Shown: one piece after another, positions 3,797-48,617 of the stretch
How positions within the stretch are numbered: the first letter of the stretch is position 1
Layout: each line of letters begins with the position of its first letter
Source: Dimorphilus gyrociliatus
Lineage: Eukaryota > Animalia > Annelida
Direction: 5' to 3'
DNA length: 64,000 nucleotides
NCBI GenBank assembly: GCA_904063045.1
Contig: CAJFCJ010000001.1
Span: forward strand, 310,001 to 374,000
Program-made: the position numbers and the translations under genes
Notes under the pieces: model-generated
The model's database searches: none
What the model was told of the DNA's origin: nothing
What the model saw: only the letters and a program-made list of their open reading frames with translations

Positions 3797-5272
3797 ATGG
3801 ACTCTAATTCAGTCGTCAGCAGACGCAACTTTGCTGTTCTTTTGTCTACAATTTCTCATCTTTCAATTGTCTTCCTACTTACAGACGCTAAAGGTAAAAA
3901 GAAAAAGTAAAAAGAGAATATTTTTTTTTAACTATAAAAGAGAGAACTTCCCTTTGTTTCTACCACATCCGCCTGTTCCTTCCCTTCCTACCCTTCCTTT
4001 TTTGATTGAAAAAGAACGTGTTTCTTTAGTCATTTTATGAGGAGAAAAAGAGAGAATGTTTCAGGTCGAGTGAGCAAAGTAGCCTCTTTTGCAATCAACG
4101 CTTCATTTATAAATGTGCGCCGCGTTTCCGACCTATACACTGCCGCGTCTTCAGGCAATTGTTGTAAATATATTGCATACGTCCTTATACATACATACAC
4201 ATATATGTATTTACTATACAGTTTAACATATCTATTGTGTGTATAAGAGGCCTATACAATATATTTATTTTAATATATTGAGAAATGTACATCTAGCTAG
4301 ACATTAATATAAGAAGAATAAATGAATAAGACATATAAGAGGTACATATCGTACGGTTACATATACAGTATATACTGTATATGTATATATAATACGTTTT
4401 GTATAACATTGAATAAATGCACGCTATGCGGCGTAAAACTGCAAAAATATCATAAAAAATGCACAACGCTCACACCTATTGTTCAACCGACACTTTTCAG
4501 TCTCGTTTTTTTTAATCAATAATCTACGCTATTAAAAACAGGCGAAAAAAGAGTATCGTTATGTGAATAATTATTGTTGCATAATTATAAACGTTAAAAA
4601 GTGTGGAACAGGAGACTTCCATAGTATTTATGTGCTGCATGTAAGTGCATACGCCGTTTAGATTTTATTCACCTCACCTCCTCCCTACCTGCCATTGTTT
4701 TTACTTTATGCAAGCAAAAAAATTTAAGAATAATTAATCACTTTTTTTTTTGTTAATTAGCTTTTCTTTTTTTTTTATAGTCAAAATCTTGTAATCAAAT
4801 TATCTTATTTTAAGGCATTTGTCCATTTACACTTGTTCACTCCTTTATTTGTATTTCTTTTCAGATACTTGTTGGCCTTTTAACTATGAAAAAACATGCG
4901 AATGGGGCGAAGTAATATTAATGCAAACAGCTCGATTTGGGAGGTGGAAAAGGAGGAGTAATTGTTCAACGTTACCCTATGATACGGGTTGTTCCTTAGA
5001 CTCTTTGAAGAATCTTGATACGTTGTGTTCAGGAAAAAATCGTTGCTCGTTCCATGTCGCCAGTAATCTACCGTACGTGCGATTCCAAAGCGAGTGTAAA
5101 GTTAAAAATAAAGATGTTATGCCTTATTTGGAAACGTTCAGCGAATGTATTAGAGGTATGAATATTGTATGATGTTGGAATATACAACTGCTTTCTTTTT
5201 ATCCTTGACTCACACAGAAAGTAAAACACCTACTTAAACACACATACGTATAGAGAAATATAGATTGTATAC

Positions 5273-5326
<54 letters not shown>

Positions 5327-7614
5327 CTGTATATTCTGTATATACATTTTTATACATTGGTAGATATCTTACATGCAGGCATACTCCCAACCTCACGCTC
5401 ACTCAAACGCTCACGTAAACGCTTACACAAACGCTCACACAACGTTTATACTCACGCTTACACACGTACACACGCCAATACCCTTTCAGTTTTTTCCTTC
5501 GCTCATCCTTTCTTCAGATCTCTATCAAGTCAATTGTGCTTTTCCCTGAATCTTTTGCTTGATCTTGTTACCTAAATGATTTTTTATTTGGTTTATTTTT
5601 TTGTGTAGTTGAAACGGAATGCGGTCGTACTATTAAGAAAAAGAATGGTTTCCTCTCGTCTACAAGGGCTTGTTCCGAACCTTGGATTATTTCCGGTAAA
5701 TCCGGCCAACAGGTTGAGTTATTCTATTATGATTTTGGTCGGAATTCTGAAACTGGGAAATGCGTTGTTCAAGTAAGGGAGGACGGAGGACGGATGCAGA
5801 CTGTAGAATGCGTACGTGATCCGAGGCAACGTCGATTGGCCTTGTATGTTAGCCGAGGGCGTCGACTAGGCGTCACCATGCTCGATGAACCGTCGGGCGG
5901 TGCTATGCTGATTGAATATCAGAGTAAGTCTACTAATCGAACGTTTGTCTTGGTTCTGGTCTCGAGTCGCGATTGATCGATTAGGCGAGCGTCGAATTTC
6001 CCCGCTTATATATGCCGCTTACTCGCTTAATTAACCGCAAACTTTCGCCGACAAACTCCAATACGGCTTGATAAAATATTTAAGCGAGGAAGATAGTCGT
6101 TATAGACCGGAGGCCACGAAAAAATTTCAATTATTCATAACCATTGTTTTGTCGTCGTGACAAACCAATCATCGCGTCTGCCTTAGGCCGAAATCTAATT
6201 AACCCGTAGCTTCCGAAAACAAAATAAATAATAATAGCAATGGTAATATTTGTAGTGAAATAGCATTGGCTTTGTCTACGAGAAAGGATTAAAGAGTACA
6301 AGAACGCATGCGCAGCTGTAAAGGTGATGAGTTGTCTCTAATTCGTAAATTGAAGAGAACAACTTCAAAGACATATCACCAGTTTCAAGCTCAGTGTATA
6401 TTTTTACAAGATAATGATAAGTAGTGCCGTACTGAAAGACACTAGATTTTGTTTTTGTTCCAATTCGTTTCTAACACTCTCGCTAATTTTTTTTGTTTCT
6501 CTTTAAACCTTGTACATCAATGTGAACTAGTTCAGAGGAAAGAGAGACACAAGCTCACAGATACACACACGCATACGTTTGTGGCTGCGAACATAATTCT
6601 TATTGATTGTTTGCCATTGTTTGTTCACAAAGCTTCTTACGCGTGCTTAAAAAATAGAAAGAATGAAACTTTCTTCGATGGAAAAGAATGAAAAATTCAC
6701 AATCGAAATTAAACACGAAAAACAGATAGTATATAACCAATATCCATATTATTTGTGTGTGTTTAGTCCCAATACTTGTTTGTCCGCAACGTAATACATT
6801 TTATTCTATTACTTTACTTGTTTAAAACCCCGTCAGTCATCGGCTGTCCGCATCCTAAGCATACCAGGCAAACGCATTACCGGCGATTCGACAACAAGCT
6901 GCAAGCCATCTGCAACCGGACAGGAACTACCACAATGCTCACCTGCAATGGAACGCATTGGGTAGGGGAATGGCCAGATTGTGGACGCCCTTCACCGTCA
7001 GATGCTTCTTGGAAGGACGTCAAATGGGGAGGAGTCAGTCTACCTTATGGTAATTTTCTTTTCATTTAGGTATATATTTAACAATAATAAATGGGGAGAG
7101 TTCTTCCGTATATTTTGATATACAATCGCAAACAATTTTATATCCACAAGTCTAAAACAGTAAATTATTCTCTCTCTCCTCGCAATCTATCTTAACTGAT
7201 GAAATATATTTTCTAGGGGTTTGGATCGTTATCATTATCGGGAGTGCCCTTATCGTTAGTCTTCTAATTCTAACAACGGGCTTAATATTCCTTCGAAGGT
7301 TTGAAACGTTTCTGTTTTATTTCACTTTATCTTTATTATTTTATTATATTTGTTATTTTCTTTCTTTTACAATTCAATTAAATCGAAAACGAAACAGGCA
7401 GATCCGCTCTAGGGACGAATCAGCAGAAGACTCTATGAAGGACGTCGTCCTAAACAGGAGTACTGGGCCCAACAGCGGCTTATATGAAAGTCGGACGGGA
7501 ACGTTGTTAATTCGAGGTCACCCCATATACGAGACTGCAACGTTGGAGAATAACGAACGAACTTTGCTGAATAATCAATGTGTTCACGCGACTGTGCTTA
7601 GCAAGCCATTGTGA
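3797..7614 (+). CDS. Receptor A: signal peptide - SUEL/Gal_Lectin domain - CUB - Sushi/CCP - TM - cytoplasmic tail (exons 3797-3893, 4865-5155, 5609-5923, 6837-7049, 7217-7298, 7398-7614)
   Basis: All six exons join in frame through GT-AG introns (phases 1,1,1,1,2). The 8-Cys lectin domain has ARFGR and CSGKNRC. CUB-like exon CGRTI..GFLSS..WIISG..QVEL. Sushi GCPHP..C..LTCNGTHWVGEWPDC. TM GVWIVIIIGSALIVSLLILTTGLIFL. Confidence 0.85.
5268..5335. repeat. (TA)n/(TATG)n microsatellite in intron 2 of receptor A
   Basis: Direct reading of the TA run. Confidence 0.9.
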
Positions 7615-9039
7615 ATGGGCATTTAAAACAAAGGGTATAATGATTGAAGAGCATCGAACTTAACGTCGTCTACCAGGTGGAAGAAACAGTTTGGGATCTT
7701 AACGACAGTACGAACAATGATTGATAAACAATACTTCCTATAATGAAATCTCGAGCCTTCGTATATATTTATATAAAGATATATAAATAGTTGTTACTGT
7801 ATATATTTATATATATTTACTTTCATATAATTCTTCTTTGTTATTTTTTATTTATTTTCTTTTAATATTCTTTCCCTCTTCTCTTCTTTGTTATTCTCCT
7901 TTTACCTTATTCGAACAATTTCCGATTCCTGTTCGATTTAACGAGATGTCGGACGTAATTAATTTTCTTCTTAGGCCTAACTCGAAGTGGTTTTAAAGGG
8001 TGCGTGCGGTCTAGTCGTTGAGTTGATGACTATTATAGCCACGGCTGCCGTCGGTACTAAGAGAGGGTGAAAATAAATAGAAATAGGGATAAGCACGCTC
8101 ATTCTTTTCTGTACGTGATACGTTAACCTTCCTTCAACCGGTAAAGGGGCGGACATGGATGGAGAAAACGACTACTTTTATTTAGATATTTTTCTATTCC
8201 TTAATCCTCTGAGAACAATACGTTAAAGTAAATATGCACGAAACAACCTGTTGGTTATGTCTCGAAAGAGCAACAGATAGCGCTCTGGTAGCCAAACTGA
8301 AGAATCCGTTTGGAAAAATTGATATGACAGTAGGAAACACCAGATGCCGCCTTGAAATAACAGCGCCACCAATCTCTTCACAAATTATCAGCATACTGTT
8401 AAGAAAGGGAGTAAGCAAAAGAGGGAGAGAGTGAGAAAGCAAGAGAGCGAGAGAGACGGAAAAGATTGAAATATAGTGTTTTTTTTTCAACGCCACCTAT
8501 AGCGTATATTGGACTGCAATCTATAGTAGACTGCCTGCAGCATCTCAGGCATGTGCTAACTTTCAGAGAGCGAATTCTGACGATCTGATGGACAATGGCA
8601 GCTGAGGAAAACGAGCTGTTTCGGTCGGTATTTCCTTTTTATTTCTTTGCAGTAGGAATTTAGTCGGTTTAAAATGGAAGCATTAGTTTACAATGTATAT
8701 AGATATTTATAGACTAGCTGGCTAGAGCAAATGTATAAAGTGTAAAATGCGTAAATCGTGTAAACAAGGAGCACTTAACATACCACATCGATCTCACCTG
8801 CGAGAAATAAAGAATTGAAGAGAATTGGGTAACGATCGGTTTGTCGAAAATAAGAGATGCTTTAAAAATTTTCAAATAAAAATTCTGAAATATACCGCAA
8901 AAGACGACTCCAAGCAGACATAGAAATTGGCGACTGATGGCTCAATCGTATTGACGCGTCCCTACTTTGCTCCCGTGATGACAGCCTATTATAATATATT
9001 TTTTTCCCAGTTGCTGTATATAAAATTTATATAATATAT

Positions 9040-9410
9040 CTATCTATTTATATAAAATATATAGTATATATATGTATATATATATATATATTATATATAT
9101 ATATATGTTTATATTATACATATATATAAATATATTATATAATATAAAAATATAGGTATCATCTTGGATTATTCTGGATTATATCTAGTGATATATATCA
9201 TACATATGCTATACACACATTAAAACTTGGCATTTATTTATGGATATATTAATCTGTTTTCAACTGTAAACTCCATACTCTTTTGCAATAAGCAGTAAAA
9301 ATATACAATATATATATATACATATATACAATATATTGCCTAGAAAACAGGATATACTATGCAGTATATGCAAGAGAAACTATATATATATATATATATA
9401 TACATTTATG
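9040..9410. repeat. AT-rich low-complexity region with several (TA)n runs
   Basis: Direct reading. Confidence 0.8.
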
Positions 9411-10532
9411 TATAGAAGTAACATCTTAGAAAGTACTAAAATTGTTTAAGACAAATATGTAATTTATTATTAATTATATATAATTGATAATGCACTTCTT
9501 GCATATTTTGATGCTATGCTTATTATAAAATTGTACATTTATAATGAAATATCATTTAAATTATGTCAGTATGAAGCTGAAAGTTAGGGAGAAAAGGGAA
9601 TTTCTGTAACTATGGGCTTTCAAGGCTCTTTATAAAATATAATTTGCAGAGGAAATGAAATCATTATAAGTTAATGATGGTCAACACTGTCACAACAAAT
9701 ATTTCACGTACTGTACATAAAAACTGGAATAATGCAGCAGCGAGAACGAGATACTGTGTTTAAAGAACGAGAGCTCGAGAAACAAGATTCTACAGCCTTT
9801 GCAAAGAAATAATCTAGCGATCTATAATCGAAATTATGCCTTCTATTTCCTAACTTACAGGCTACCAACTGCTTTAGTCAAAGAGTTCTAAGCAGCCATA
9901 TAGACTCGTCTACGTTTGGTGATATTCCCTCTGCCATGGATCAGTGGTATTGTTCAGGGAATTAGTTCCATAAAAGTACCTTGTTACGGTCTCATTTTGT
10001 AAATTTACTCATTTCACTTACATTTAATCGTCTCTCTGTAGCCTAAAGGCTTAAATAAGTATATTGTGTAAAGAAAGACTAAAGTCATCCTTATGGGACT
10101 ATCATTTAGACTCAGATCATCTGATAAGGTAGGATCTATGCTCTAAAGTAATATTATTAAAAGTTTGAAATTTTATATATAAATCATCATATTTAAGAAA
10201 TATCCGATAATATTAGGATTTGCAGTCAAGTAATAGTGAAGGAAGTATTTAGCTTCCAACTGTATAATTTTGTCTGTTTGTTAACAGATTTTAGTAGTCA
10301 TTAAATGATTTTAATAGCTTTTGTAGCCTAATATAAAGTATATACAACTCAAAAAGTACTGTATATATACTACAGACATGATCTCTCCGGATACAAATAT
10401 AAACATATTCTATATATATGCAGTATATAAATACTCGCTCATATAATTTTAAACGTGGTAGAATGTATAGGCCTAATTTTAATCAATAGATAATCGTGTA
10501 GATTAAAGACGTTAATCTCCTTCTTGCAGAGA

Positions 10533-13500
10533 ATGTACGATCGACTGGTATGCTCACGATTCGAATTAATTGTCGTCCTTGTTATAACTGGAGTTCTACT
10601 CGAATCAGGTCAGTATTTATTTGTAATCGGAAGGGAGCAGTCTTTAGTGGGAAAAGATGAACGCCTGAGCGGCGATATTTTGTATTGTGAACGTCGGTCT
10701 ACTAATATCGTTAGCGTCGACTGGCGTACTTGAGCCGTCCTTCTCTAATAAGATTACTCTGACCGGCGGCGTCACTAAACCAAATCATATCGTACTCTAA
10801 ATGTATATTTATTTATTTTATATGCTGTACTCAAAAATATTATTCATATAGTGTTTTTTCGGGGAGAGGGGAGGGGGGCTTGAACATCTGCCGAATGTTT
10901 ATCTTGCAAACTATGCTTTCGGCGTCGGGGTAAACTCGATCCGCCAGTCGTTAAATTGCACACGCGTTCCGAATAGAAACTGTATATATTGGAAACATAG
11001 ATTGCATACATAACGCGGCTCTCGGGATAATCTCTGCTCTCGCGTAAAATGTGCACGAATTTTTCCTTTTTCTTTTCTCCAAGGCGTTCCTCAGAGACGC
11101 CAAGAGAAATGCGAGACTTTTAGTTTGACGCTTTTTACAGCCCTCTTTAATCACCCTTTTCTCTTTCTTTCTTTTCTTTTTCTACCTCTTTCCGTATGCC
11201 AACTCCCCACCCCCATGCTGCTTTTTTTTCTCTCAAAAAAGACAAGAAAAGTGAGCAAAATCGATCACATAGCATTTTTCACTCTCAAGGTTTTTTTTTA
11301 AAATTTGTACCGTTATCCTGAATGTTCGCTCAACTGCGAAAAATTCGCTTCCGCTAAGCAAATTGGCAGGATTCGTTTAAGTCGTCGTTAATTAAGCGAA
11401 TTGACGTCGAATTTTAAAGAACGCCATCTGTTTCGATGTTCATTTTAATTTCCAGAAAACATTAAATCGGGGTGGGAAGAGTCTAATATGCTACCCTATA
11501 GGCGGATTGGCTAGTGAAAAAGCAATTAGTTCTTCCAGGTTGACTTTGACTTTTTTCCTGGGCTTATGGGAGAAATAGAGAATAGGTTGGGTAAGGGCAG
11601 AGGGAAAAGGCATTCTATGGGAAAAAGTCTTAGCTGTTAACGAGATGTGGGAAAGAGAACTCCGTATTCTATCTACTTTCTTTATTTTCTAGTTGACAAA
11701 GTTGACGACTCATGGACGACAAAAGAATTTAAATCAACACCTACAAACAAGTCGGGCTTCTTCTCTTCACCAAACTATCCAAATAAATATCCTGGAGGTC
11801 AGCGAATTTTCCTCAGATTCAAAGCCCAAGAAAACGAACGAGTCAAGATCAAGTTTGTAGATTTTGACGTTCACGGCCTATGGCCTGAGTAAGTATAACT
11901 GTACTGATTTTCTGCTTGATTTCGTTCAATGAGAACGTTTGTAGGCCTTTCTCAAATATATATATATATATATACATACAGTATATATATTTATAGATAT
12001 TCTATATAGATTTATTATAATAAATGTATATAGATGTACTATAAATATATTTATATCCGCAACTCTTTGATCAAACTGACTAGTCTCAGTATCATATATG
12101 CATCTAAAATCAAATGAGAGAATTTATTCCCGTTACCCACCTTTTAGAGCTTTCAGCGAGGCGTATACATTACAGGGAATACTCTCTTTTGAGAACAATT
12201 GACTGCTCTTTCATATATCTATTACGATTGTCCCTCAATGATAATTGGGCCGCCAACACCATATACTATATATCGTTTATACCGTAAACAACGAATATTG
12301 TAAGCGTTCTAAACCAGCTTCTTTGGTATATAGTCACGTGAGATAAGCCGATTTCTCCTTTTTAACCCTGTTCGTTGAAAGGTTAGAAATAATTTAAGCC
12401 TAGTTTTATATTTTAATAATGAGAATTAGTATCATTTGAAAGGTAAAGATAATTAAGAGATATTGGTTTTATAATGGTTGAATAGATTTTAATGTAAATT
12501 TAATTTAGTCGTCTCTTATCAGGCAGAATAGTCAGTCCTATTTAAATATCACAAGTAATTCAATCAAGAGCCCAATTGTCGGTGTATCCTTGATTCTCGA
12601 TACAAGCTACTACAATGGTTTATTCCTTCCTCTTCAAAGAGAAAATAATCGGGAAAAATCTCTCTACAGATCATATCTTTGCAAGATGAAGCATTTAAAT
12701 TCTTTTTTACCCATTTAGACTTTCTTTCTTCTCTTTGCAGTTATTCTCATATTCCCTTTTAACTATACAGTAAAAAGCTAAGGCATTTCTATCTAAAATC
12801 TAATATTTTGTAAGTAACAAGAATGAGTAAATGACGAAAAACGTTGACAAGAGTGAAAATGACACAGAGCAATTGTTTATCAATCACCGACTTTTTAAGC
12901 CTATTAGTTTATGCTTTGCAGTCTTGTTTGGAGAAAAAGCAAGAAAATTAGCCATACTGTATTACTTTATAACGTAAAAAAAAAAAAGAGAGAATATATT
13001 TATTTTTCCCATCTCTTCTCTATTACCACAGTAATTTCGTTTGACTTTTTCATTCATAATTCTTATCGATTAATTTATCTTAAAGTTATTCACCGAAAAA
13101 CGTTTCGCTAAATAATTGATGAAAACGAAAATCCGATAACGTCATTTTGAAAGAATTCTGTAATAAATCACCTGCAACATGCTGAAAAAAATCCCGCATT
13201 TATCTCGTGTGTAATAGCTTAACTTTACCAAAGAAAAATAGGACTCACATAAAGACAATGCGCAGATAGCGAGGCCCGATTGACGCGTTTCCATGGTGAC
13301 GTTTCGTAGAGGCGTTCTTTTTTCGTCGTCCCGATTGATCTGCTCGTGACGGGATCGCCAGTCAAAAGGTCAAGGACAGGCAGTATTAGTGTTTTCTCCT
13401 TTCACTTATTCTTGGACCGCCCGCTCGAAAATTGTTGGAGTGAGCAATCAGTCAGACAGGGCTTTATGGTTTAGACTGCTAGAGTTGTATAAAAGTATTC

Positions 13501-16500
13501 GGGTCACGGATGAAAAAGTAGTCTGTTCCCTTTTATTGAAGAGGCGAGAGGATAGGGGAGAAAAATAATAACGAAATCAAGGATAAGGTCGAAGTAGAAG
13601 GTTATAAAGAATATTCCCTAGCTAATTTATCCAGAACCTGTATTCCTTGGGGTTTACCAAACGTTCAGACGTATAGATATCGTCCTAAGATTACAACTTA
13701 GGTGATACAACGATATATTTATAATACACACCTGTTATTTAACGCCTCATTATCTCTTTCGAACTTCTCTATATACGACAAGGGATTTATAGCAATTCGA
13801 GAGCAGCGTTAGCTCTCGTCATCAACTCGTTATGAATATTGATGAAGTGGCTTCGAGATGGCTTCGTTTGTTTCTTTTAAAGAAAACCTTGATGCTGAGA
13901 TTCCAAAAACATCTGTTGAAACCGGCAACACTGTCACTCTGTAATTGGTTACTGCCAACGTAGAATGTAAATACTATATAACTATTTACGTATGACGAAA
14001 ATTCTAGAGGAAGTCTTAATACAGTGCTTTTATTGATCTGACAAAATTGAAAAAGAACGCTGATCAAAGAGTCTCAGTTCCCCCATCCCTTCATCAAGAA
14101 TACGACGGAGTGATGCGTAAAAAATGGAGAGAAGGGAGGGGCGGAAAAAGGTGTAGAAAGGAGGGAAAAAAGGTTTTCGATATAAATATTAGAGGATTTT
14201 TGGATAAACCTTGACATAAAGCGATGAAAGTAAGCCGATCATTTGTAGGTGGGGGAGGCATTTGGTATATATCACTCTCTAACCTCCTAATTATCTCTCC
14301 TATAGAATAATTTTTACAAAAAATATTGACAAAAAGAACTGTTAATAGTTCGATATCTATCCAATCGATTGATTCGATAAACATCTATTATACATGCTCT
14401 ATATTCAATATAATATTAAATATAAGACTGTTTATCGAATGATCTGTAATTTATAATGCGTCAAATTTTACTCGTAGTATACTGAATATCGATATACTGT
14501 ATGTATAAAAAAAAACTCTGAAGAGAACGTCCAAATTGCTCGCTGACGCCTACTAGACGTTTCGAATTGAGTTTTGCTGCAATTGCACCGCGTCGCATCT
14601 GGCTTCTTTACGACTTGCCAATTCGCTATTTGAGATATTTCTCTTCTTCAATTCGATTCTATCAAGCAGCCGAGCGTATAAATTCCGTTAGAAGCATCGT
14701 TCATCAGATGGCGTTACTTTACAGGTGCCAACGCGATTATATGGAAATCTACATAAGAGTCGAAAACATCTCGGACTATAACAAATGGGATCTTCATAAT
14801 AAATATTGTGGAAACTCGGTGAAAGAAGTTCCGAAAGTTCTTGTCTCCTATTATCGAATTATTATAATAGGTTTATTCACCGTAAAGAGGAGTCCCCAAG
14901 ATGCTCCATATGATAGGAGGACGGGCTACAAGGGCTTCGCCGGTACTTACGAGTTTATCTCTGACAGTATTTACAACGTAAGTCTTCACTGCGATATGAA
15001 CTTGCCCTAGAAAACTAAATCCCAAAATCATTTCCATAATACAGATTGGCAAGATAGGAAATAGGAAATCCGACTGTCGTTATCTTTTAACGAAACCGAA
15101 TGGTACAGTTGTCTCCCCAACATATCCTGGTCAGTATTCAGATAACATGAATTGTGAGTGGAAAATTGAAGGCCCGAAAAGGACAAGAATATATTGGAGA
15201 TTCGAAGATTTAGACGTTTTCGATGGTGGAAAGCAGTAAGTTCTATTATTGAATCATTATTTTAACAGAGTGATAATACGTGATACTTATTTTCTTTATC
15301 AACCCATTAGCTGCCCCTATGATTCGGTTGTTATCTATGATGGCAATTCTATTAATTCACCGACAATAGGTACTTTTTGCGGAAAAGACTCTGGTTTAGA
15401 GATATGGTCTACTACAAATAGTCTAATTATCTCCTTTACAACGAAATCTGGCAGACAATCGGATACAAACATCCAATTTACGAAAAACAATGATATTACT
15501 ATGGCAGGCTTCCGAGCAATTTATCGCATTTCCAATAAAATTGTGTCCTTAGATTCGAATACCTTGACACATGTCAGGGGAACTGAATGTGATGAACGCA
15601 TCAAATCTGAAAAAGAATCTGCAGGTGTCATAAAATCACCCCATTGGCCAGGACCTGTTCCTACCAATATTACTTGTGTCTATACTATAGACGGTTTACA
15701 AGATCTTCATAATTTAGAAAAAGTTAAGTTAAATATTACAAATATGACTATTCCCAAGTACGGAGAAAAGTGCACTAGTGGATTTGTCAAAGTCTATCTT
15801 AGCGTACCAGAGAAAGTTGAGGATAGTCTTTCAAAGCCTCCTGATTCAACACTTTGTGGACAAGGTGTGAAAGCTTTTACATCAGCAGGTCCCCGCATGG
15901 TTCTTGTATTTCATGCTCATAACGACAAAGAATATACAAATCGACGATACGGCTTTGAAGCATCTTATCGATTTGTTACTGACTATGCTATACCTGGAAA
16001 ACCTCTTTCAAAATCTGTATGCCATTTTCGTTACTCTTCACGTTCAGCTCGAGTAGGAAGGTTCAATTCACCAAGATTTCCGTCCCGCTACCCTCCTAAT
16101 ACTAAATGTACTTACGAATTACTAGGAAGAAGCGACGAATGGATTAGATTATCTTTCAAGAAATTTGATTTGGATACAAAACCGGATTGTACTGGAGATG
16201 TTCTCTACGCAAAAGAATACGACAACGGTAAAGAGGCTCTAATAGGACGTTATTGCGGGAAATTACCTCCAGGGCCCTTACAATCCGATACGAGTAAGGT
16301 GAAGTTTGTCTTTCAATCTGGGTCAGAATCTGCTGGCTCTGGATTTAAGATAAAGTACGAATTCTTCCGTCGCGTTAGACCCACGAGTGATTCGGAAATT
16401 TGTGGAGCTAACAACTTGGGCAGGGAATATAGAGGAGGAGTTATAATTTCCTCAAATTTCGGTCATAAGTATAAGACAAATAGGACCTGTGACTGGATTA

Positions 16501-17126
16501 TTTCTGTTAAGGCTTGGGCTAGAGTGCTTATTCACTTTTCCGAATTCAATTTGGAGGGCCATCTCGAGAAGCAGGGCTGTGCCAATGCTGTACTAAAAAT
16601 TTATACCCGTAGAACTGCCCTCCCAACATATGAATTCTGTGGTCCTCAATTACCAAATAGAACTTTTTTATCTGATGAAGGCTACATGAAGATTCGTTTC
16701 GTGACTGTTGATAAGGCAATAGGCGGAAAGGGTTTCAAATTAAGCTGGGCTGCTGTAAGAAAACAAGGCAGGTGCGAACAGTTCATATGTCGTAAATCAG
16801 GCTATTGTATAGACAATTCACTAAGGTGCGATAAAATTCCTCATTGCGGACTGGATGACGACAGCGATGAGACGTCAGAATGCCCGAAATACGGCCAGGA
16901 TTCCCTTTTGACTATGATATTAGGGATTATAATTGCTCTCGTAGTATTTGTTATACTCATCGTCTGCATCGTGCATAGAAAAAGAAGGAATGGCAATCAC
17001 AGATCGGGCAAGAACCGATGCAAACAGTTGGAAGTTAAATACGTTACCAGGACAACAAACAATGACCGTTTAAGAGATGGAAGGCGAGAACTATTAGAGC
17101 ACACAGAAAAAGTGTCGAACGTCTAA
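10533..17126 (+). CDS. Receptor B: signal peptide - 5 CUB domains - LDLa - TM - short tail with PDZ-type C-terminus, LEV-10-like architecture (exons 10533-10608, 11693-11888, 14725-14977, 15045-15235, 15311-17126)
   Basis: Exons join in frame (phases 1,2,0,2). Five CUB units, each opening with a G-x-x-x-S-[P/S]-x-[Y/W/F]-[P/G]-type motif. LDLa CEQFICRKSGYCIDNSLRCDKIPHCGLDDDSDETSEC. TM LLTMILGIIIALVVFVILIVCIV. Ends TEKVSNV*. Confidence 0.9.
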
Positions 17127-18499
17127 CAACAAATCAATCGATCAAATATTCCGTTAGAAGAGAAAGAAAAGTTGAATATAGAAAAAGGAAAAGAACAATG
17201 AATTTGATTCTTCTACTTAAATCTCGTTAAAATGGGAATCAGAGAAAAAAAGACGCTTGGCTAATTAATTATAGAGCAGGGTTCGAACTATGCAAACTCA
17301 ATTTTTCCAGCCATATAGTATGACAGCTAGAAAATTTCTCTTGTTGCCTAGATTAGCACGAAACGATTAATGAGATTTCGTTGTGATACAGACTTATTAA
17401 ATAATATAGGCGGGTAAAAAGAATATACTTACGTCACGCAATTGCGCCATCTATCAGATATCATTTTTTTTTCGTAAACAAACACTTCTGTATCGTATAC
17501 AATTCGATGCCGACCTTGCCTTAATATGATGTTACTATTAGCGTATAAACGATCCGTATGCAAACTGTAAACAATGTTCTTTGTGTACTTCATCTATGCG
17601 CGTAGTGTATATGTGAAAATTATATTAGCTAAAGATTTTATCTATCAATAGCCCATAGTTTCTCTTTTCAATCAATTTTCCGATTATTTCCTTGTAAACA
17701 TTTACTACAAAATGAAGAAACTCCCCTTCGTTTCGAACATAGGTTTCCTGCGTGAAACATAGGCTGACAACTTACTTTTTTTTCACAGGAAAGGGCGGCG
17801 TTTGAATAGAGGTAATTAACGCACGCACACTATGCGTTTGATAAATTATGGATGGCAATTACTTGCCAAACTACTTTTTTACACACAAACCGGAGCGTCG
17901 GGGCGAAAAAGAGACACCGAATTGAAAACGCATTAGAATCTTCCTTCACTTTAGTCTTTATCCTTTACCCCTTATTTACGTACCGATTAGTTTCTCGCTA
18001 CACGTATTTAGTTTAGTTTTTACAGTTTCTCAAATGTAGAGACATTTTCCACGAATGCATCATTCTATTTTTACTACAAAAAAATGGTTTATAAGAAGGC
18101 AAGCGTCTATTTAAAGCGTCGTTTCTCATCTCACTCGTTTGATAAATATATTCACAAATATATAAATACTTTATCACTTAATATGTTAAAATCAAGCAAT
18201 TTCATAAATATATGCAGATCCATATAGATCGTGTGCACAGGTCTATTTTGTTTATTGGTATGATAGGCTGCATTTAATCATATGCTTTACTCGTTTTTTA
18301 TACATGGAATATACATATTCTTATTTAAGTAGAAAAGTATCGAACAGGCGAGAAGAGACGTCGCAATTTCCATTCGAACAAGATTACAGTTCGCTGGAGC
18401 ATTGTGGCGCTTCGAATCCCACAGGTGCCACAGCACGGCGCTCATTTCGAACGGCGTCTAGCGGCGTTGCGAACCGTCACTTTTACTAGCGCCGCTGGA

Positions 18500-21400
18500 A
18501 TGATCGGCCGTCTCGCTTTCATCGTCTGCTTTGTAATGATATGGGCGAAAGGTGAGCGACCATCTTAATGTTATTGTTATTTTCGGTCTATTTCTTTATA
18601 TTAACTTTATAAAAGAGGTAGTCTAGAAAGAAAAATGAAATAAATTAGACGATATTAATAAGCGTAAAAATATCACTCGTCTAGTTTTGTACATCGCCGG
18701 AAGACCACCATGGACTTAATATCCTCTGATCAAGGATTCCATTACGGCGACTTAGGGAACTGATTAGTGAAAAGCACTTTTAAGTTTAACTAGATCAGAT
18801 CAATGGGTATATTCTCCCATATATGTATATTAAAAAGGATACTTGTCTATATCGAGATACACTACGTCCGTGTGTACAGTATATAAATAGTTCTCGCCTA
18901 TACGCTCTGCATATAGTCAACATTTATGAATAAGGAAATATAAAACTTATATTACCTTATTATTTCACATTAAAGTGAATCATAAATGCACACTAGTATA
19001 CTTAGAGCTAAGTTAATGATAACGTTTGAGAGAAGTGTAAAATCTGAATTGATGTGCTTTGTTTTTAGCCTTAAAATGATATGTACCCCAAAAAGTAGAA
19101 AGTATCTACACTTCATGCATGCATATACTATACATTAGGCATAGATTATTCTATTTTTACATCATCTGTTAAAAGACGTCTAAAAATATGGATATACACT
19201 CGCACAAAAAAAAACACTACATGTATACTCTGTGCATGACATCGTTTAGTAGAAAATTTTGAAGAAGAAAAGGAACCTGTTTCATCTAATTCATTCCGAA
19301 CTTATTAACCTCTGATGATTTTGTACATTTTTCAAAAACTCTTTGATATTGTATCGCAACGCAAACGAATTCGTACAGAATTTATGAAGGAAAAGAGAAG
19401 GGCAGAGGAAAAAAAATCTGTTCAATAATTAATTAACTCTACGACTCATTCGCCTCACACATTATATCATGTAATCTTCGAGCCGGATATGTTCGATCAA
19501 TTGCGGCGCCTGACTTACGATATTAGATTACAGGTGTCTTAAGAATATGTCTTTGTATATCTCTACATCCCTACTACCTTCTTTGTGTTTATCCACCGTA
19601 AATATTACGATATATGTTTTTATATAAGACGCTCAGCGTTTTTTCCCTCTCTCCCTCTTACGTTCTCTTTCCTTTCTCTCTCACTCCCTCTTTGACTTTC
19701 ACTTGGCCTTCTATTTATATTGGAAACGTTTCTTTTTCTTTTTAATAAAGCGACCGGCGGGGGGAAATTCTTATAATATATGGATTAGACGTCAGAGGAG
19801 ACGCTTAATTGAAACAGCTGACATTCGCGTTTAAAAGAAAATTATTGCTTTCGCTGTAGGCGTCGACGCATCATAATTCACCTTGTCAAAACTCTCGCTA
19901 ATTAACGTCCGTCTGATAAATAATTTCGTCGCGTACGTCTATTTGTTTATGTTATACAAACGCCGCAATATGACAAAGTAGAGAGATGAGAATGCTTAAA
20001 ACGATGAGATAGGCGACCGTTACCGTCTGCATGGAATTCGTGCCGCAATTGCCTTAGAAAGTATACGACGGAACAAATCGCTCAGCGTCTCTCGTTTTTT
20101 CTCCCTCTGCCTTTTTTTCTTGCTTCTTAGACGGATGTACTTCAAAGTAGTTTTTAATGAAGCGATACGACAGCGTCTCTTTTGCAATATATACCGTCAA
20201 CTTTACTGGCATTTCCCCGTGCACGTCGTTTTGCTTTTCAACTTGTTTACTCTCACACCTTTTGCTACTGCAATACTGCAAAAGTCTTATTGACTTGAGC
20301 AAAAAGTAGCACGCTACTTGGCGCCTGCGAAAACGAATCGATAGGGGAAAAGAAAACGCTCAGATGTTTATATATATATTTATGTAGATATATAAATTTA
20401 AACTCTATACGTATCTATATATACTTAAAACTACTTATATATAAATTTATATATATATATATATATGTAGTGTATATATACATTTACATATAGTAAGTAC
20501 AATATACATAAACACACACTCACATTTTATATGTATATACATATATGTATAGTATAGTTTATACATTTATATATACATATACGTATATCTTAGACTAGGC
20601 ATATAGTGTTTAATATATAATGTCTCCATGCAATGTGCAGTAAGGAGAATAAACTGAAGTATACAAAGTCGACTAGTCATTTACTCAACGTTGTATATAT
20701 TATGCAAATATTCTTTTTGTGAGAAATAAAGACAAGATGCATCGTGTTGGGGAAAATATCAGCAGAAATGTAGAGAAAATTTTAGTCTATTGACTACAGT
20801 TAGCTGGCTCTCCAATAGACGCCCATCGACGCCGCCTGGCATAAAAATGACCGGCGGTCAGCGAAATTTTCGTGCGTAGTCGGCGAGAAATCAAGTTCGA
20901 TTGCCTTTGAATAGAACTTCGTTAGAAAGTTTGTCGGCGCAGTATGATTCGATAAGACCAACTCACGCACCAGGTTCACCACCTCTCATCCATATTCATT
21001 ATGTAAATTAGCGAGCCAATTGTTTAATCGTTAAGAGTAAGCAAAGAGAAATACAAACTAAAATGCCTTTTTTTTTCTTCAAGCGAAATTTAATTACTTT
21101 TCTGAAAATAAACATGTACTCTCGCACGTGTATTAAAGTGCTTCATCTATATTCATCGTACGCAATTGGTTTAATTAGAAAAGCATGGCCGTCTATGAAA
21201 TTTACATATACAGCGACGCCCCTAAAGACGCCTTTTGACTTTTAATACAGACTTGAAGCAGGAGGTCATCTGCAAAGGAGAAGATCTCAACCTAGAGTGC
21301 CCTCTTCATAGAATTATTAATGTAAGTTATGCTACCTACGGTCGTGTAGAAAACAAACGATACTGCAACACGGAGGGAGACCGACCCTGCGAAACCGATC

Positions 21401-23576
21401 TTACAGAAAAATTATATTCAAGAGTTTTCGGAAAAAGAGAATATTACCTACCCAATCCATCTTCGATATTCGATAAAAATGGTAGACTTAGCGCTCAATG
21501 TCGTTCAGACAGGCAATATTATTTGATCGTACATTATACGTGCAAACTAAGTAAGTATTATTCATATTTTGTCTTATTATATTTTTATTATCAAAAATCG
21601 AAAGACTAATAGAGATTAGACGGCAACTAATCGAATATAAGAATAATAGTGGCGTACGACGTTAGCCGTTTTATCCATATAATTCAATTAATTACTTAGC
21701 CCTTATCTCTTTACCAAGTCGGCCCGAATCCGGGATGCAGTCGATCTGCACGAAGACCGACCGTATCTAAGGAGGAAAGAGAGATCTACTCAGCAATCGT
21801 TGAAGATTGTGACAATAACCCTAGCTGGACTCTGCAATCGAATTCTGGCTATGTTATCAATTTCGAATTGCTTCACTACAACAATAACTACAGTCTAATG
21901 TTTGTCCCTTCTGGAGACGATCACTGCAAAATTAAACTTGGCCGAATTAAGTCAGGCAACGACGCCATGAGTATTTGTTTATATCCTAGAAATCTACGGG
22001 GCACGTCAAACGCAATAGAATGGAGTACAACAAACAGTATAGCAAAAGTTGAATTCTTTACGCAAGTGATACGACAGCAGGGCGCTAATTTTAAATTAAT
22101 CTATAAAGGTATGCGGCGTTTTTCCTTTAATCTTCCCTTAGCATAAAATCCTATCGTCGTTTTTTTTACAGAGCACGGCTGCGCTCAACCGCAATTTTCA
22201 ACCGATTCATCCATTTTATTACATAGAAAAAACGCCTATACTTTCGAAGTAACGTGCAAAATGTATGAAGCGTCTACATTCGAAATGCGTTGTGAAGGAG
22301 GAAGGTGGTCACCCGAAATAAACGCTCAACGGCAATGTAAGATTTTCCCTTTGTTTAACGTTATTATCTTAAATAGTTTGGGTAAAAAGAATGGAAATAG
22401 AACCGTTGAGAGAAATAATAGCTTGTTAATAACGCAGGCGTGGTTATGCAAATTAGACCGCAGGCATATATTGTAAATAGGTGAAGGCAGAAAGCTGTTT
22501 AGAAGCCGTAACTTACGTCAATGTTGACAATTTTATTCGACGCCCGCTTTCGAGTCTAATTAGGTAGGATACTCTGGAAGGAGGGAGGTTTTAGGTCGTA
22601 AACGCCTACGACGTTAGTCGATTTATCGACTCGGATTCGTTCTATTGTGGATTTCCATAAACAAAGAAACGAACGAACGGATTGGAAAAAGCGTTCTTCC
22701 TGTTCTTTATAAAGCGTTGAAAGTCGAAATACATACTTCTCCCTTTAGTCTATTTTATACTAGGTTAACATTTATGTAGTGAAATATAATTTTTCTACAT
22801 GTAATAATGACATCGCTAGCTTCGTCTTAAATTGCATATAAAGCGATAACTTAACATGAAAAAAAAGTACGATTTCTCTCTTACTTTTAATTTGTGCTTT
22901 TCTAATTATACGTATATCTTTTTTAATTAATAGTTACTCGTATAGTTTTATGATCACGTGATTTTCTTGTTTAACCAGTAAGAGAGTCAACTGCAGGCTA
23001 AAAGCTATAGCCCCAATGGAGTCAATGGCGACGTGTTTTTTTTCATCAATTCTGTGTCAATTTTCCAAAGATTTTCCCAGTGAAATAACGCGAAAATTTA
23101 AAAAAAAATGAGGGAGGAGATACAGAGAAGAATGCATGCTTTGCTGTGTGTTTTTTTTTTAATATATATGCAATACATAATTAACGAATAGGTTGAGTTT
23201 TGCAGTAGAGGAAAAAAATCAAAAATCATTAGCGTCTTTATATCTGAGTGGTCATTGCAGCGTAGTGGGTTTCAGAAGATATATCTATAAATGACGTAGC
23301 GTCTAAAAATATATATTTATAAGGATACGCTCTGCAATTTATATATACAGAATAGAATATATCCTAATATACAGTATATATATATAAGCTGTTGTGGAAT
23401 ATGAAAGTACATTTCTTTACACATAGTGCATGTATACATTGTCCACGGAATACTGCTTCCTTTGATAGTGTATTTAATTTATGTTCGCCCAATTATATAA
23501 TGTTCTTTTGTGCTTATCAAAAATATATGGATTTACTTACAAGTTGTTTATGTGTAGACTCCAAATCTATATACAA

Positions 23577-23630
<54 letters not shown>

Positions 23631-25042
23631 TTATATATGTGCCACATATTTATATATATTTATTTATATGCGACAATTCCCCAAGGCTGTGTGGTACGAG
23701 CGGAATGTCAGCCTTGGAGTGTATACTGATAAATAAGTGAGACGGCTGCAAAGCATGTCGAATGTTAATCATATAATGTATAAGATGTTTTTTTTTTCAG
23801 GCGGCGTCGAAGCGTCTTCCGATGAAAAGCTCCCGATAGGTAAGAAAACACAAAATTATTATTTATTTAAATTTCAAAGGCGAACTAGGATTACATGTGA
23901 CCAACTATTTTTCTTTGACGTCCTTATTTTACTGCTTTAAGGAGCTATGCAAAAAAAAAAAAATTAAACAGTTCGTATAGTCCAGCCAGATTAGCCGTCT
24001 ATTCGTACGCCGCCTAGCGTTCTTCGTGACAAGAATAACTTCTGCAAACCCAAAATGATTTTTGCCAGCTTCTTCCCAATCCTGTCTACTATCTTCTTCC
24101 ACCCGGTGCCGCCCACCCGCCGTTCGTTTCCTCCCCTTTCCCCTCCCTACCCGACCTCATTTTTTCTAAATAAATCTTTTTTCATCAGTGACCTTCTAAA
24201 TAATCCTTTTACAATCTTGTTCACTGTTTTTGTACGTTTTGTGTGAGGGCGTCATATTTTTTTTTCTTGACGCCTTTGCCGCAAGCATGTTATTTAGTCA
24301 TTTACGACCATTTGCATGACTCGTAGCGTGCGACTAGACCGGAGCCTTTGTCGGCGAACGTATTAGCTCGTTAGTATTCGCCTAACCGTCCGTTTTACGC
24401 TAATTTAAACGCCTATAGGCCTCATACGACTAGTCGATCAATCGCTATTGTTCCGCAGGCGTTTGGGTGGCCGTCATAATCGGGATGGCGTTGGTGGTGA
24501 GTGCAATTATACTAGTAATTGGCTTTGTTTTCTTGAAGAGGTATAAGGCCCTCGTTGGACACGAGTCAAGTAGGTCAATTAACCGACTTGTACCTTTCAG
24601 GCAAAGACGCCTTAAGGAGTTGGAGCGAAGAAAGCAGGAAGACTACAGCAGAGCTGTCTATTCCTGGCCAAATTCAGGGTCCGTAAAAGGAAATGTTACA
24701 GCATCAACAAGGCCTGATTTAGTGTTTGATGCCGAAGCAGACTCTCTTCTCCATCCAGCTGATCATGGTATTGGTAATGAGAGAGAAACTGACGAAATTT
24801 ACCGGAGGATAGCGCTAGACCCGGGGGTCTTGCTTGTAACATCCGATGGCTCCGATTTACCGGAGGTGCTTAGAATGCAGCCACTTCGTAGTGTTAGGAA
24901 ATTATCGAAGAAGGACACAAGGGCCTACATTTACGAAGACGAGTTTGAGAACGTCGCCAATTCGATGATGGACGCCAAGAACGATGTAGGCGTCGTTTAC
25001 GCTAAATTGCCTTCGAATGACAGTATTCCGGCTGCAATATAA
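18500..25042 (+). CDS. Receptor C: paralog of receptor A; signal peptide - SUEL lectin - CUB - Sushi - TM - Tyr-motif tail (exons 18500-18551, 21251-21550, 21719-22108, 22172-22336, 23801-23839, 24459-24540, 24601-25042)
   Basis: In-frame GT-AG junctions with the same phases and domain-per-exon layout as receptor A, plus a 39-nt stalk exon. Lectin LECP..INVSYATYGR. Sushi GCAQP..C..MRCEGGRWSP. TM GVWVAVIIGMALVVSAIILVIGFVFL. Confidence 0.85.
20340..20620. repeat. TA-rich low-complexity tract in intron 1 of receptor C
   Basis: Direct reading. Confidence 0.8.
23575..23665. repeat. Long (TA)n microsatellite
   Basis: About 45 bp of uninterrupted TA plus degenerate flanks. It produces the spurious YIYIYI ORFs. 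Confidence 0.95.
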
Positions 25043-26088: not shown

Positions 26089-29000
26089 TTATAATTGTGC
26101 AATATCGAACATCTGCAATGCGGGTCTCGTAACTCTGACCGATGCTGGCTGGGCGTCGTCTTCCCGACTGTGTTGACGACTGACCCGGATACTGACCGGT
26201 TTAGGATCGTCATTCAAATCCTCATCGCCCTCGAAGGCACTATACGCTGGGTTAGCACCTTGGCTGGGAGCCGCTGACGTCCATGCCGGGGGAGTTATCG
26301 TTCTGCTTGAGGAAGTTGATTGCTTAAACCAGTTTGATTCTCCATTCAGCCAGACTCCCCCACTAGACACCAAAGAAGATGTGTTTAATTGCATTGCAGA
26401 ATGTTCTAGTTCTTTACTTTTGACATCGTTTTGAAGGCGCTTCCGTAGAACATCCTCCCAACCTTCAGCCACATTTTTCTTTCGAAAGCGTTGCTTTGGT
26501 AACGGTTTTAGCGTAACTACCTTTTGCGAACTTCCGTTGTCTGTGCTGTACTCACTGATAGCGATACTGCTACTATCATTATCAATTTCTTTTGAAGTTG
26601 AGGCCGATCGAACTCTTAATCCCTTTGAACTCTGAAGCGGTTTTTTCTGCTCAGGTATGGATGACGGACCTGGGATAATCCTTGCAGGAGGGAAAGGTAA
26701 TTCAATATAAGCCGGTGAACTTTTTGTTTGTTTATTTTTCCTCTCTTCCAGTTCTTTGGCAGCGTCTAAATCATCAATACTCATACTTTGATTTCTTTTC
26801 AGTCGTGCAAGGGAAGGACCCCTATCTGTGTTCAATCTAATCACCATAACGCCAATATTCTCGCGGCAACCGTAGCTTTGAGCCAGATCTTGCAATTGTT
26901 TAGCTGCAGCAACAGGACTACCAATATCGTAAATCTTTTCTACAGCTTCGTCATAGCTTACGAATCTCCATAGCCCTTTATTACCGATAATTACAAATTC
27001 ATCATCTGGCCGAAGTGCTATTCTTGTTACGTGCGGATCAGGAATAACATGAGGGTAGAGATAGCTGACTCCCAATTGTCTGGTACACTTTGTGGTGCCG
27101 TTAATTTTCCCCTCTTCCGTAACGATAGCACTTGTTTCGTAAATTCTTTGCCTCTCCTCACTATCGGAAATCGAGTGTAATTTAGTAATTAATTGAGCGT
27201 CTCCTCGTCTACACAATACTGCTTCAACATCGCCGACGTTTGCTAGTTGGAGAGTATATTGGTTTATCATACCAGAGTATGTTCTTCGAATATACATAAG
27301 GGCCACTGACGCACCGATCTTTTGACCAATGGAAGCCAATTTCGCATGAGCTCTTATGAAAGTGTACTTGAGAAATTTGCTTCTGTTACCACTTCTCTTT
27401 ACTTCCTCATCAAGTATTTCAGGTAACAAGGTAAGGAGTCTCTTTGCTACCTGATCATTCCTACCGCCATCTATTAAACCAACAACAGCAGAATCTTTTC
27501 CACCAAAAGATAACTCCCTAACTAAACTTATGCACAATTTATTACGCCAACCGGGACTAATTGAAAATCCAACTTTCCAAGGTAAAGTTGGATCATGATC
27601 CGCTGGGTCATCCAAAGGATCGGGGAAATTTCGACCAGTTAATCCTGGTAAACCCCTATTTTGACCTGTTAAATCCACTAGGCAAACCCTTTTTTTATGT
27701 CGAATATTCTTGAATGCCTTAGGGTCAACCTTTAACTGTGCGTTTAGGCTCATGTCTAACAAACTAATTTGAGATGCCATCAAACTTGTTACGTTAACAT
27801 TTAACAGTCGATTGTGTCCTACATCCAGAACACGTAGGTTAGATGCCTTTTTTAGATCTGGTAGAGAATTTAGAGCATTTGAATGGGCCCTTAACACGAC
27901 TAACTTTTGAAGATTTCCCAAGCACGAAGGAAGAAATCTTAATTGATTACCAGACACGTTAATTTCTTGCAAGAACTGCAAATTGGCTATTTCTTCGGGT
28001 AATTTTGTCAAATCATTATAAGCCAGGTGCAATACCTAGAAAAATGCATTTAAGGCTATAGTTAATTAATTATTGGTTAGCGAAGGGAAGGAGGTCACCT
28101 TGAGACGATGAAAGCCACAGATGGTCGAACAAGCCCGATCATTTAACAAATTTCCAGTTAAGTACAACTCTTGAACTTTGTTTAGGTCGTACGTCTCATT
28201 CAAGTTTGGAAGGAAATTGAGTCGATTTGAGGACAAATTCAAAATCTTTAATTTGTTAGCACATTGAAAGAAATAGCATGGTAGTTGTTTTATTCCGTTC
28301 GCCTGTAGATAGACTTCTTCGATGAGGAACGAACGGCCTTCTTCTACCTCCGGCAAATCAGTAAGCCTGTTATGGTCCGCTCTCAGTATGCGTAATTTTT
28401 TTGCGCCAGAAAAAATCCTGAGCGGAAGATTCGATAGATTATTATTGTTGACGTAGAATCTTTCTAAGAAGAAGCATTCGGACAAGTAATCCGGTAGGGC
28501 GCGTAATTGATTTTGAGATACATCAAGAGTATGTAACAGTTCCGGTTTGGGTGAAATGGCAAACTGTTCTAAACCTGTGGAAGTAAAGGGAAAAAAGATT
28601 ATTATTCTCTCCCTTTTGTTGAAGATTTTTCAAGAAAAGACTAGGAGGAAGATGATATTTGAAGAATAAAGAAAAATAAAAAAAAGAAAAAAATAGTTTA
28701 CTATTGTTCGAAGCAAATACTTCTTTGAGGCAATTGCCACACAACTGCAAATTACTCATTCGATTCCTTTCGCAATGCAGAGATTGTAAACCCTTTACGC
28801 ATCGTAAATCGAGATCAGTCACATAATTATCTCTTATATCCAAATGAGTTAGTTGTTCTAGAACATGAAACTTAAATGTTTCGGATGCGTGCAACTGCAA
28901 TCTATTCAGTCTTAAGTCAATAACTTTGGCAAATTTCAACTTTGATAGTATTAATTCATTTGATAACTTGGAAATTTGGTTGCCAGACATAATTACCTTC

Positions 29001-31145: not shown

Positions 31146-31556
31146 ATGGAGGGTATTCAGGAGCCAACTCAATGCAGATATTCTTGCCCGTATGGAGTAG
31201 ACGATTGGGCAACAAATTGGACATCATCATTCCGACCAGTTTTTTTTGAACACACCCGCATAGTAGCCTCCGCCAGAAGAAACGAACGCGAAAGAAATCG
31301 TGTAAAACACATCAATTCATCGTTTGCTGTCCTTAGGCAAAAACTACCATCCTCCAGCGGAAAAAAGAGGAAATTGAGCAAGGTCGACACTCTTAGAGGA
31401 GCAATTGATTATATTCGACATTTACAAAAATTATTAAAAAAGACCGGCGGCGGGCACGTGGAAGATGAAGACGAGACAGAAGATGATGAAGATATGATTG
31501 ACGACAAAGTATCAGACGAACAAAATAGATCTAACAGTCCAAAAAATGAGCGATGA
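31146..31556 (+). CDS. ASCL: Achaete-scute family (ASCa-type) proneural bHLH factor, intronless
   Basis: [26 protein letters not shown]...[18 protein letters not shown], followed by an acidic tail. The usual C-terminal LLDF/Y..W motif is not visible. Confidence 0.92.
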
Positions 31557-48400: not shown

Positions 48401-48617
48401 ATACATACACCGTAAAGTGATAAATAAAACATTTCCATCCTGTCGGTCGTTCGAGAAAATTATACACCTTTCCCTGGATGCTCGTCTTTATTGGAACTTT
48501 GTGTCGGCCTCCTATATATCGGCTGTCAAACGATTTATCTAACATAGGATTCTCTGAACCTTCTCCCTGACTCCTTCGTTCCATCTCATATTCCTCTTTA
48601 CTTATTTTCCCGCTCAT
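45439..48617 (-). CDS. KCNQ1: Voltage-gated K+ channel KCNQ1/Kv7.1 (exons 48617-48409, 48286-47316, 46940-46799 or 46504-46429, 46330-46057, 45543-45439)
   Basis: [22 protein letters not shown]4 [28 protein letters not shown], filter TTIGYGD, helix [11 protein letters not shown], helices [41 protein letters not shown] and helix [13 protein letters not shown]. Confidence 0.95.

Follow-up and report, generated by a model that had tools for sequence, protein, structure and literature searches.

Three genes for membrane proteins with a single transmembrane (TM) helix, here called A, B and C, lie in tandem on the + strand of a 64-kb window of the genome of the marine annelid Dimorphilus gyrociliatus (the window is the whole stretch of DNA analysed, C1:310001-374000 of the 77.9-Mb assembly, C1 being contig 1; feature coordinates below are window positions). 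A (3797-7614) and C (18500-25042) have the architecture SUEL-CUB-Sushi-TM, and B (10533-17126) codes for five CUB domains, an LDLa-like module and a TM helix; an earlier reading of this DNA from its letters alone (the original prediction) had described a same-strand trio with these domain orders, and the description holds for all three genes. This apparent new receptor trio resolves into two separate, ordinary assignments. Based on sequence comparison, we consider it likely that, jointly, A and C belong to a multigene family of type I membrane proteins in annelids, in which both are old and have diverged strongly, that B is the sole D. gyrociliatus orthologue of a pan-protostome family of 5xCUB-LDLa-TM proteins that includes the presumed LEV-10 of Caenorhabditis elegans, and that the three genes adjoin by chance. 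The architectures, the size and taxonomic spread of the A/C family and the orthology group of B are shown here.

We delimited the exons and splice sites of A and C from open stretches combined with a splice-site scan of the + strand, and made all searches, folds and trees for these two genes on single exons, never on spliced proteins. With the Pfam cut-offs for SUEL (PF02140, 31.4 bits) and CUB (21.4 bits), the lectin alone is recognised, at 31.7 bits in A (above cut-off) and 21.8 bits in C (below it); Pfam is blank on the CUB and Sushi exons of both genes, and its Sushi model has no match anywhere in the 64-kb window. Both lectin exons match the sea-urchin L-rhamnose-binding lectin in the PDB (5h4s; E 1.2e-4 for A, 4.7e-10 for C) as well as latrophilin rhamnose-binding lectin (RBL) chains. 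The identity of the following domain emerges from a profile of six paralogous second (CUB) exons, whose PDB matches are CUB chains only (cubilin 3.8e-9, C1s 1.5e-7, MASP-2 1.8e-5), and from one paralogue, F, whose CUB exceeds the Pfam cut-off (22.8 vs. 21.4 bits). The CUB exon of A scores 82.6 bits against the paralogue profile without C, a profile that still contained A's own exon. For C, the most divergent copy, an AlphaFold model of the CUB exon (predicted local distance difference test score, pLDDT, 77.6) aligns in the VIA structure search with the CUB of TMPRSS6 (Z 10.1, root-mean-square deviation 3.3, 106 residues), and further with ADAMTS13 (Z 9.2), MASP-1, neuropilin and Neto2 (~Z 8), over a range of Z 10.1-7.

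The third module carries four Cys and one Trp that are invariant in 12/12 copies, and a profile of the third (Sushi-like) exons has weak PDB matches to a CSMD1 sushi (E 0.037) and factor B CCPs. An AlphaFold model of this module from A (pLDDT 79.6) finds nearly exclusively CCP modules (C4BP, MASP-1, IL-15R-alpha, CD55, CR1, factor H) at Z 4.3-2.5, values that are low, as expected at 50-60 residues. Family profiles, PDB matches and AlphaFold models thus bear out the order SUEL-CUB-Sushi-TM that had been read from the letters of A and C.

Across the D. gyrociliatus genome, PF02140 matches at 126 places, many of them in tandem multi-lectin arrays. Among them are long head-to-tail arrays of near-identical SUEL units with a period of ~468 nt and 74.6 bits for each unit, at C7:400-23546 (-) and C12:800-11400 (+) (loci L003-L022); these arrays supply many of the 126 matches and, lying at contig ends, probably code for giant proteins with many lectin domains. 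A search with the CUB-exon profile returned 13 places. In 12 of these, a SUEL match lies upstream and, where the locus reaches far enough, a Sushi-like and a TM exon lie downstream; the thirteenth, on C6, was rejected as a family copy, being an unrelated Neto-like gene. Six copies are on C1, at ~190, 195, 269, 314 (A), 331 (C) and 438 kb, spanning 250 kb, and the six others are on C3, C7 (two), C23, C27 and C30, giving a lower bound of at least 12 copies on 6 contigs. In some paralogues lectin, CUB and Sushi are fused in a single exon, as in F (C1:269 kb; L025:3195-3893 +) and H (C7:1.99 Mb; L034:1162-1926 +), where the phase-1 introns between domains, still present in A and C, have been lost.

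The family extends well beyond this genome. A word search with the three-domain exon of paralogue F gave no match, owing to its word and length limits, and an exhaustive HMMER search with a three-domain profile from five multi-domain exons then gave 3694 matches at E <=0.001, 69 of them at E <=1e-30. Among the best 150 matches, ~100 are proteins of 400-650 aa that cover the whole profile in one stretch; about 100 sequence clusters have the SUEL-CUB-Sushi-TM architecture. For 84 of these proteins we took medians: a length of 470 aa, a TM helix that begins at residue 312, and 17 Cys in the ectodomain. All of the named proteins that we looked up (18/18) are annelid (Capitella 7, Arenicola 7, Dimorphilus 2, Paralvinella 1, Helobdella 1), and the Atlas cluster of the family has 106 members, all Annelida. 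Pfam sees SUEL only in these proteins, and occasionally CUB; this annelid-wide, expanded receptor family carries a cryptic CUB and a cryptic CCP that Pfam misses.

In GenBank, Arenicola marina proteins of this family bear the name "Gal-binding and CUB domains containing receptor" (2, 3, 4, 6, 10, 15), and many further members are found in Capitella, Paralvinella and Helobdella. The Arenicola receptors (UCK81571-UCK81586) and their relatives share the signal peptide, SUEL, CUB, a Sushi-like module with four Cys and, near residue 310, a TM helix, with the whole ectodomain matching one profile at E 1e-23 to 1e-49; the GenBank name omits the Sushi-like module. Compared with them, A and especially C are fast-evolving, with cytoplasmic tails that lack detectable similarity. 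A search of the literature on the Arenicola family name and on the architecture found no functional paper. The claim that no characterised family has the order SUEL-CUB-Sushi-TM thus stands as far as function is concerned, but the family itself already has a name: A and C are new members of a named, functionally uncharacterised annelid family.

Within the family, A falls in a subfamily recognisable by a stalk/TM signature (L-P-Y/F-G, then I-I-G-x-A-L). More general versions, a stalk motif (hydrophobic-P-x-small) and a TM motif (aliphatic-G-aliphatic-A/V/I-hydrophobic), were rejected as a signature of the whole family, with 22/84 and 32/84 proteins carrying them, respectively. In 72 cytoplasmic tails, immunoreceptor tyrosine-based inhibitory and activation motifs (ITIM, ITAM), YxxPhi, NPxY and di-leucine motifs showed no enrichment over shuffles (z -1.0 to 1.2), and the tails of A and C have no detectable similarity to the tail of any other member.

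A and C have diverged strongly, from each other as well as from the rest. BLASTP aligns their lectins at 28% identity over 47 aa and their TM helices at 46%, and finds no match between them in CUB or Sushi. A retains clear kinship outside the species, with domains that match members from other annelids at least as well as D. gyrociliatus paralogues (62 bits for the lectin, to a Capitella protein, 29 bits for Sushi and 24 bits for CUB). C matches other annelids directly by its lectin only, and its CUB and Sushi are tied to the family solely through the D. gyrociliatus profile; against profiles built without C, it scores 35.8 bits for SUEL, 19.0 for Sushi and 16.2 for CUB, the last compared with 6.0 bits for the best of 500 shuffles of its CUB exon. 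In a tree of SUEL domains, the D. gyrociliatus rows are on long branches, with a branch of 4.15 for C vs. a median of 0.58, and an approximately unbiased (AU) test neither supports nor rejects A and C as sisters (p 0.548).

The same numbers could be taken as signs of decay, C and perhaps A being copies without function: the SUEL branch of C is long, its SUEL falls under the Pfam cut-off, and its CUB exon has no single-sequence match to any family member. Against this, all five exons of C are open, its splice sites and phases are all intact, its structural Cys and Trp are retained, and the very exon that lacks single-sequence matches folds confidently as a CUB, all of which makes loss of function highly improbable.

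Gene B belongs to a different and far more conserved family. We placed its exons by tblastn of the annotated protein P0001 (DgyrCDS52) on the window, with several boundaries approximate; the large exon is 100% identical to DgyrCDS52 of D. gyrociliatus. The protein has 843 aa, with five CUB stretches, a TM helix and a 30-aa tail ending in S-N-V, and the gene is single-copy in the genome. Its orthologues (E 1e-143 to 1e-54) come from molluscs, annelids, copepods, tardigrades and nematodes. Those of molluscs, annelids, copepods, one tardigrade and one springtail are of the same length, at 31-38% identity, and the nematode relatives are at 28-32%; a Caenorhabditis member aligns over 90% of the query at 32% identity (E 1e-83). 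Many of these orthologues carry PF00057 (LDLa). Searching from the Caenorhabditis bovis member recovers a single family, conserved in all nematodes and arthropods. Its C. elegans representative, P0201, is a 906-aa protein with five CUB stretches, encoded on a chromosome of 15,072,434 bp; lev-10 maps to chromosome I. The published description of LEV-10 is of a type I protein that has five CUB domains, one LDLa and a TM helix (PMC9083331).

Comparison of C-termini among the orthologues (P0001-P0030, P0200-P0231, P0258-P0314) separates nematodes from the rest: lophotrochozoans end in Q-K-V-S-(M/I/N)-V and arthropods in D-S-V or D-T-V, which are class I PDZ-type, and nematodes mostly in T-F-Y-G (D-M-Y-A in C. 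elegans). The PDZ motif that the original prediction noted in B therefore holds up: lophotrochozoans and arthropods conserve it, and nematodes have replaced it. The prediction's view of B as a LEV-10/Neto-type protein is likewise upheld. LEV-10 and B share five CUB domains and one TM helix, with an LDLa in LEV-10 and an LDLa-like module in B, but B and its lophotrochozoan and arthropod orthologues end in S/T-x-V, unlike the nematode proteins. Through its CUB domains, and with LEV-9 and OIG-4, LEV-10 clusters levamisole-sensitive acetylcholine receptors in C. elegans. B is probably docked to a PDZ scaffold by its conserved C-terminal S-x-V; LEV-10-type proteins are single-copy and protostome-wide, and their PDZ-type C-terminus outside nematodes suggests an anchoring unlike that of the C. 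elegans model. Neto and SOL-2 have the order CUB-LDLa-TM, as B does with its LDLa-like module, and a PDZ-type C-terminus, with two CUB in Neto and five in B. A Neto/SOL-2-like open exon also exists apart from B, at C6:5332455-5333366 (L039:1435-2346 +), with one strong CUB, LDLa, TM helix and a basic tail.

Why, then, does B lie between A and C? The original prediction proposed that the three may form a co-functional module, and had itself named, as what would speak against one, membership of A and C in a large dispersed family with no conserved linkage or co-expression with B. The first half of this is true of A and C, whose family has at least 12 copies on 6 contigs, and we find no support for the module beyond adjacency itself. 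Only A and C, of the at least 12 copies, adjoin B, across spacers of 2.9 kb (A-B) and 1.4 kb (B-C). As B is single-copy, at least 10 copies work without a B neighbour. The six C1 copies are loosely clustered over 250 kb with five gaps between them, of which the A-C gap is one, and B would sit there since the receptor family forms a loose, interrupted cluster along this part of contig 1. The adjacency thus probably reflects chance and not a module. Some points weigh against the joint interpretation given at the outset. The common strand, the short spacers and the unusually long, almost wholly single-copy introns are compatible with shared regulation. The LDLa of B scores 18.9 bits (E 0.0018), under the cut-off of 24.1 bits, with a six-Cys acidic-cluster pattern visible. 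Finally, P0201 is very probably LEV-10 on the basis of architecture and chromosome, with no source naming it so.

In its strongest form, the alternative holds that A, B and C make up a co-regulated extracellular module at cholinergic or other synapses, with the CCP-bearing A and C playing LEV-9/Hig-like parts beside B. It is encouraged by the common strand, the short spacers and kb-size single-copy introns in a genome with a median of 66 nt, and by the fact that C. elegans LEV-10 works with a CCP protein (PMC9083331). Yet A and C each combine a single CCP with a TM helix, whereas LEV-9 and Hig are secreted multi-CCP proteins, and canonical multi-CCP genes are present elsewhere in the D. gyrociliatus genome; moreover, the family is dispersed as described, and sampled Paralvinella and Helobdella members are on scaffolds other than those of their B-like genes, which is a hint only. 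We regard such a module as very unlikely. A narrower version, in which the LEV-10 orthologue of annelids has recruited some SUEL-CUB-CCP receptors as membrane-anchored partners that supply the CCP which secreted LEV-9 gives nematodes, strikes us as even harder to credit; if it were true, A-B-C with their long single-copy introns would be a co-regulated synaptic gene cluster. In the genome, we saw no LEV-9-like gene, looked for as a WAP domain next to a CCP array.

For A and C, we propose a ligand type and a signalling route. Each family member begins with a signal peptide and a SUEL tip, continues with a divergent CUB, a short CCP/Sushi-like module and a short stalk, and ends in a fast-evolving tail behind the TM helix. 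The lectin tip may bind glycans of galactoside or rhamnoside type carried by other cells, matrix or microbes, and the CUB-CCP pair would act as a spacer and protein-binding module, as CUB2-CCP1 does in C1s/MASP. Output could pass along the conserved stalk/TM segment, perhaps with a partner associating laterally, or along the copy-specific tails. The annelid SUEL-CUB-CCP family is a candidate glycan-recognition repertoire for immune or cell-recognition roles.

Family members might instead be auxiliary subunits or organisers of ion channels or synapses, like Neto, SOL-1 and SEZ6, independent of any linkage to B. The alignment of the C CUB model with Neto2 and neuropilin CUB at Z ~8 would fit this idea, but CUB folds are all alike at that level. 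By Atlas features, SEZ6 (CUB + Sushi + TM) ranks third among the nearest clusters, and first once SUEL-lectin proteins are set aside, with a score of 0.85 that is to be read only as a lead, and a TM segment is conserved in about a third of members. Channel auxiliaries are usually few and conserved. The lineage-specific expansion, fast divergence and non-conserved tails seen here are more typical of recognition or immune receptors, and we consider the auxiliary-subunit reading unlikely.

In A and C, as in SEZ6/CSMD and in CUB2-CCP1 of C1s/MASP, a CUB is followed directly by a CCP in an extracellular chain, but those proteins have several alternating CUB/Sushi repeats or a protease, and no SUEL; sequence-level kinship is limited to the domains. 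With EVA-1/EVA1C and latrophilin, A and C share an N-terminal SUEL/RBL on a membrane protein. EVA-1 has two SUEL and a FAM176 tail, with no CUB or CCP, and latrophilin is an adhesion G-protein-coupled receptor. An assignment of A and C to EVA-1/EVA1C was rejected, as they have one SUEL and their tail exons have no FAM176 match, and an assignment to LEV-9/Hig/Hasp was rejected given a single CCP-like module and a TM helix vs. secreted many-CCP proteins, with or without WAP or Ig.

The longest introns of the three genes are large for this species, and the sizes of 0.9-2.8 kb given for them earlier agree with our measurements. A and C have one exon per domain, with all domain-boundary introns in phase 1; introns measure 971, 453, 913, 167 and 99 nt in A and 2699, 168, 63 and 2077 nt in C (so 913-2699 nt for the long ones), and B has introns of ~1.08 kb and ~2.8 kb plus two short ones. 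In the compact genome of D. gyrociliatus, an annelid of miniature size, the median intron measures 66 nt, and introns with open chromatin are larger than other introns (PMC7854359). In the three long introns that we searched genome-wide, almost everything is single-copy, and only TA microsatellite tracts are multi-copy, so these introns are not inflated by transposable elements, which we accordingly rejected as the cause of their length. A heavy regulatory load in the long introns of A, B and C is a reasonable idea, because open-chromatin introns are the larger ones in this genome (PMC7854359). The compact D. gyrociliatus loci would suit the study of regulation of both families.

Table 1 Exons of genes A, B and C and TA-rich tracts in the 64-kb window, with the evidence for each
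Feature	Position	Strand	Content	Evidence
A exon 1	3797..3893	+	start codon and signal peptide, phase-1 donor	open frame, splice-site scan
A exon 2	4865..5155	+	SUEL / rhamnose-binding lectin	Pfam PF02140 31.7 bits; PDB 5h4s E 1.2e-4
A exon 3	5609..5923	+	divergent CUB	Pfam blank; family profile matches only PDB CUB chains
A exon 4	6837..7049	+	Sushi/CCP-like module and stalk ending S-L-P-Y-G	Cys/Trp pattern, AlphaFold (AF2) model
A exon 5	7217..7298	+	TM helix	46% identity to C's TM segment, E 8e-11; splice sites read
A exon 6	7398..7614	+	cytoplasmic tail and stop, behind 99-nt phase-2 intron	sequence read
B exon 1	10533..10608	+	DgyrCDS52 signal peptide, boundary approximate	tblastn
B exon 2	11692..11889	+	CUB1 N-terminal half	Pfam CUB 31.1 bits; tblastn
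B exon 3	14711..14983	+	CUB1 C-terminal half, boundaries approximate, behind ~2.8-kb intron	tblastn
B exon 4	15033..15236	+	CUB2 N-terminal half, boundaries approximate	Pfam CUB 40.5 bits; tblastn
B exon 5 (last)	15310..17126	+	CUB2 remainder, CUB3-5, LDLa-like module, TM helix, short tail ending S-N-V; start approximate	Pfam CUB 201 bits in 4 stretches; LDLa 18.9 bits
C exon 1	18500..18551	+	signal peptide, phase-1 donor AAAG/GTGAGC	splice-site reading
C exon 2	21251..21550	+	SUEL / rhamnose-binding lectin	Pfam 21.8 bits (sub-cut-off); PDB 5h4s E 4.7e-10; C-less profile 35.8 bits
C exon 3	21719..22108	+	very divergent CUB	C-less profile 16.2 bits; AlphaFold (AF2) model
C exon 4	22172..22381	+	Sushi/CCP-like module and stalk, 3' boundary inferred from phase	C-less profile 19.0 bits; Cys/Trp pattern
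C exon 5	24459..25042	+	TM helix, 166-aa cytoplasmic tail, stop codon	open frame; TM match to A
TA-rich microsatellites	5268-5326, 9017-9154, 11956-12056, 20369-20588, 23578-23669		tracts in several long introns and the A-B spacer	

No non-coding RNA genes or tRNAs were found in the 64-kb window, and translations of the open frames suggest several neighbours of other kinds. Downstream of C, at 26089-30409 (-), lies a PHLPP-like gene with leucine-rich repeats and a PP2C phosphatase, with gaps of only 33-37 nt between its open frames, and a KCNQ-type potassium channel is read at 47188-48662 (-). Two basic helix-loop-helix genes were also read from their translations, one of achaete-scute type at 31146-31556 (+) and one of HES type at 55125-55622 (-).

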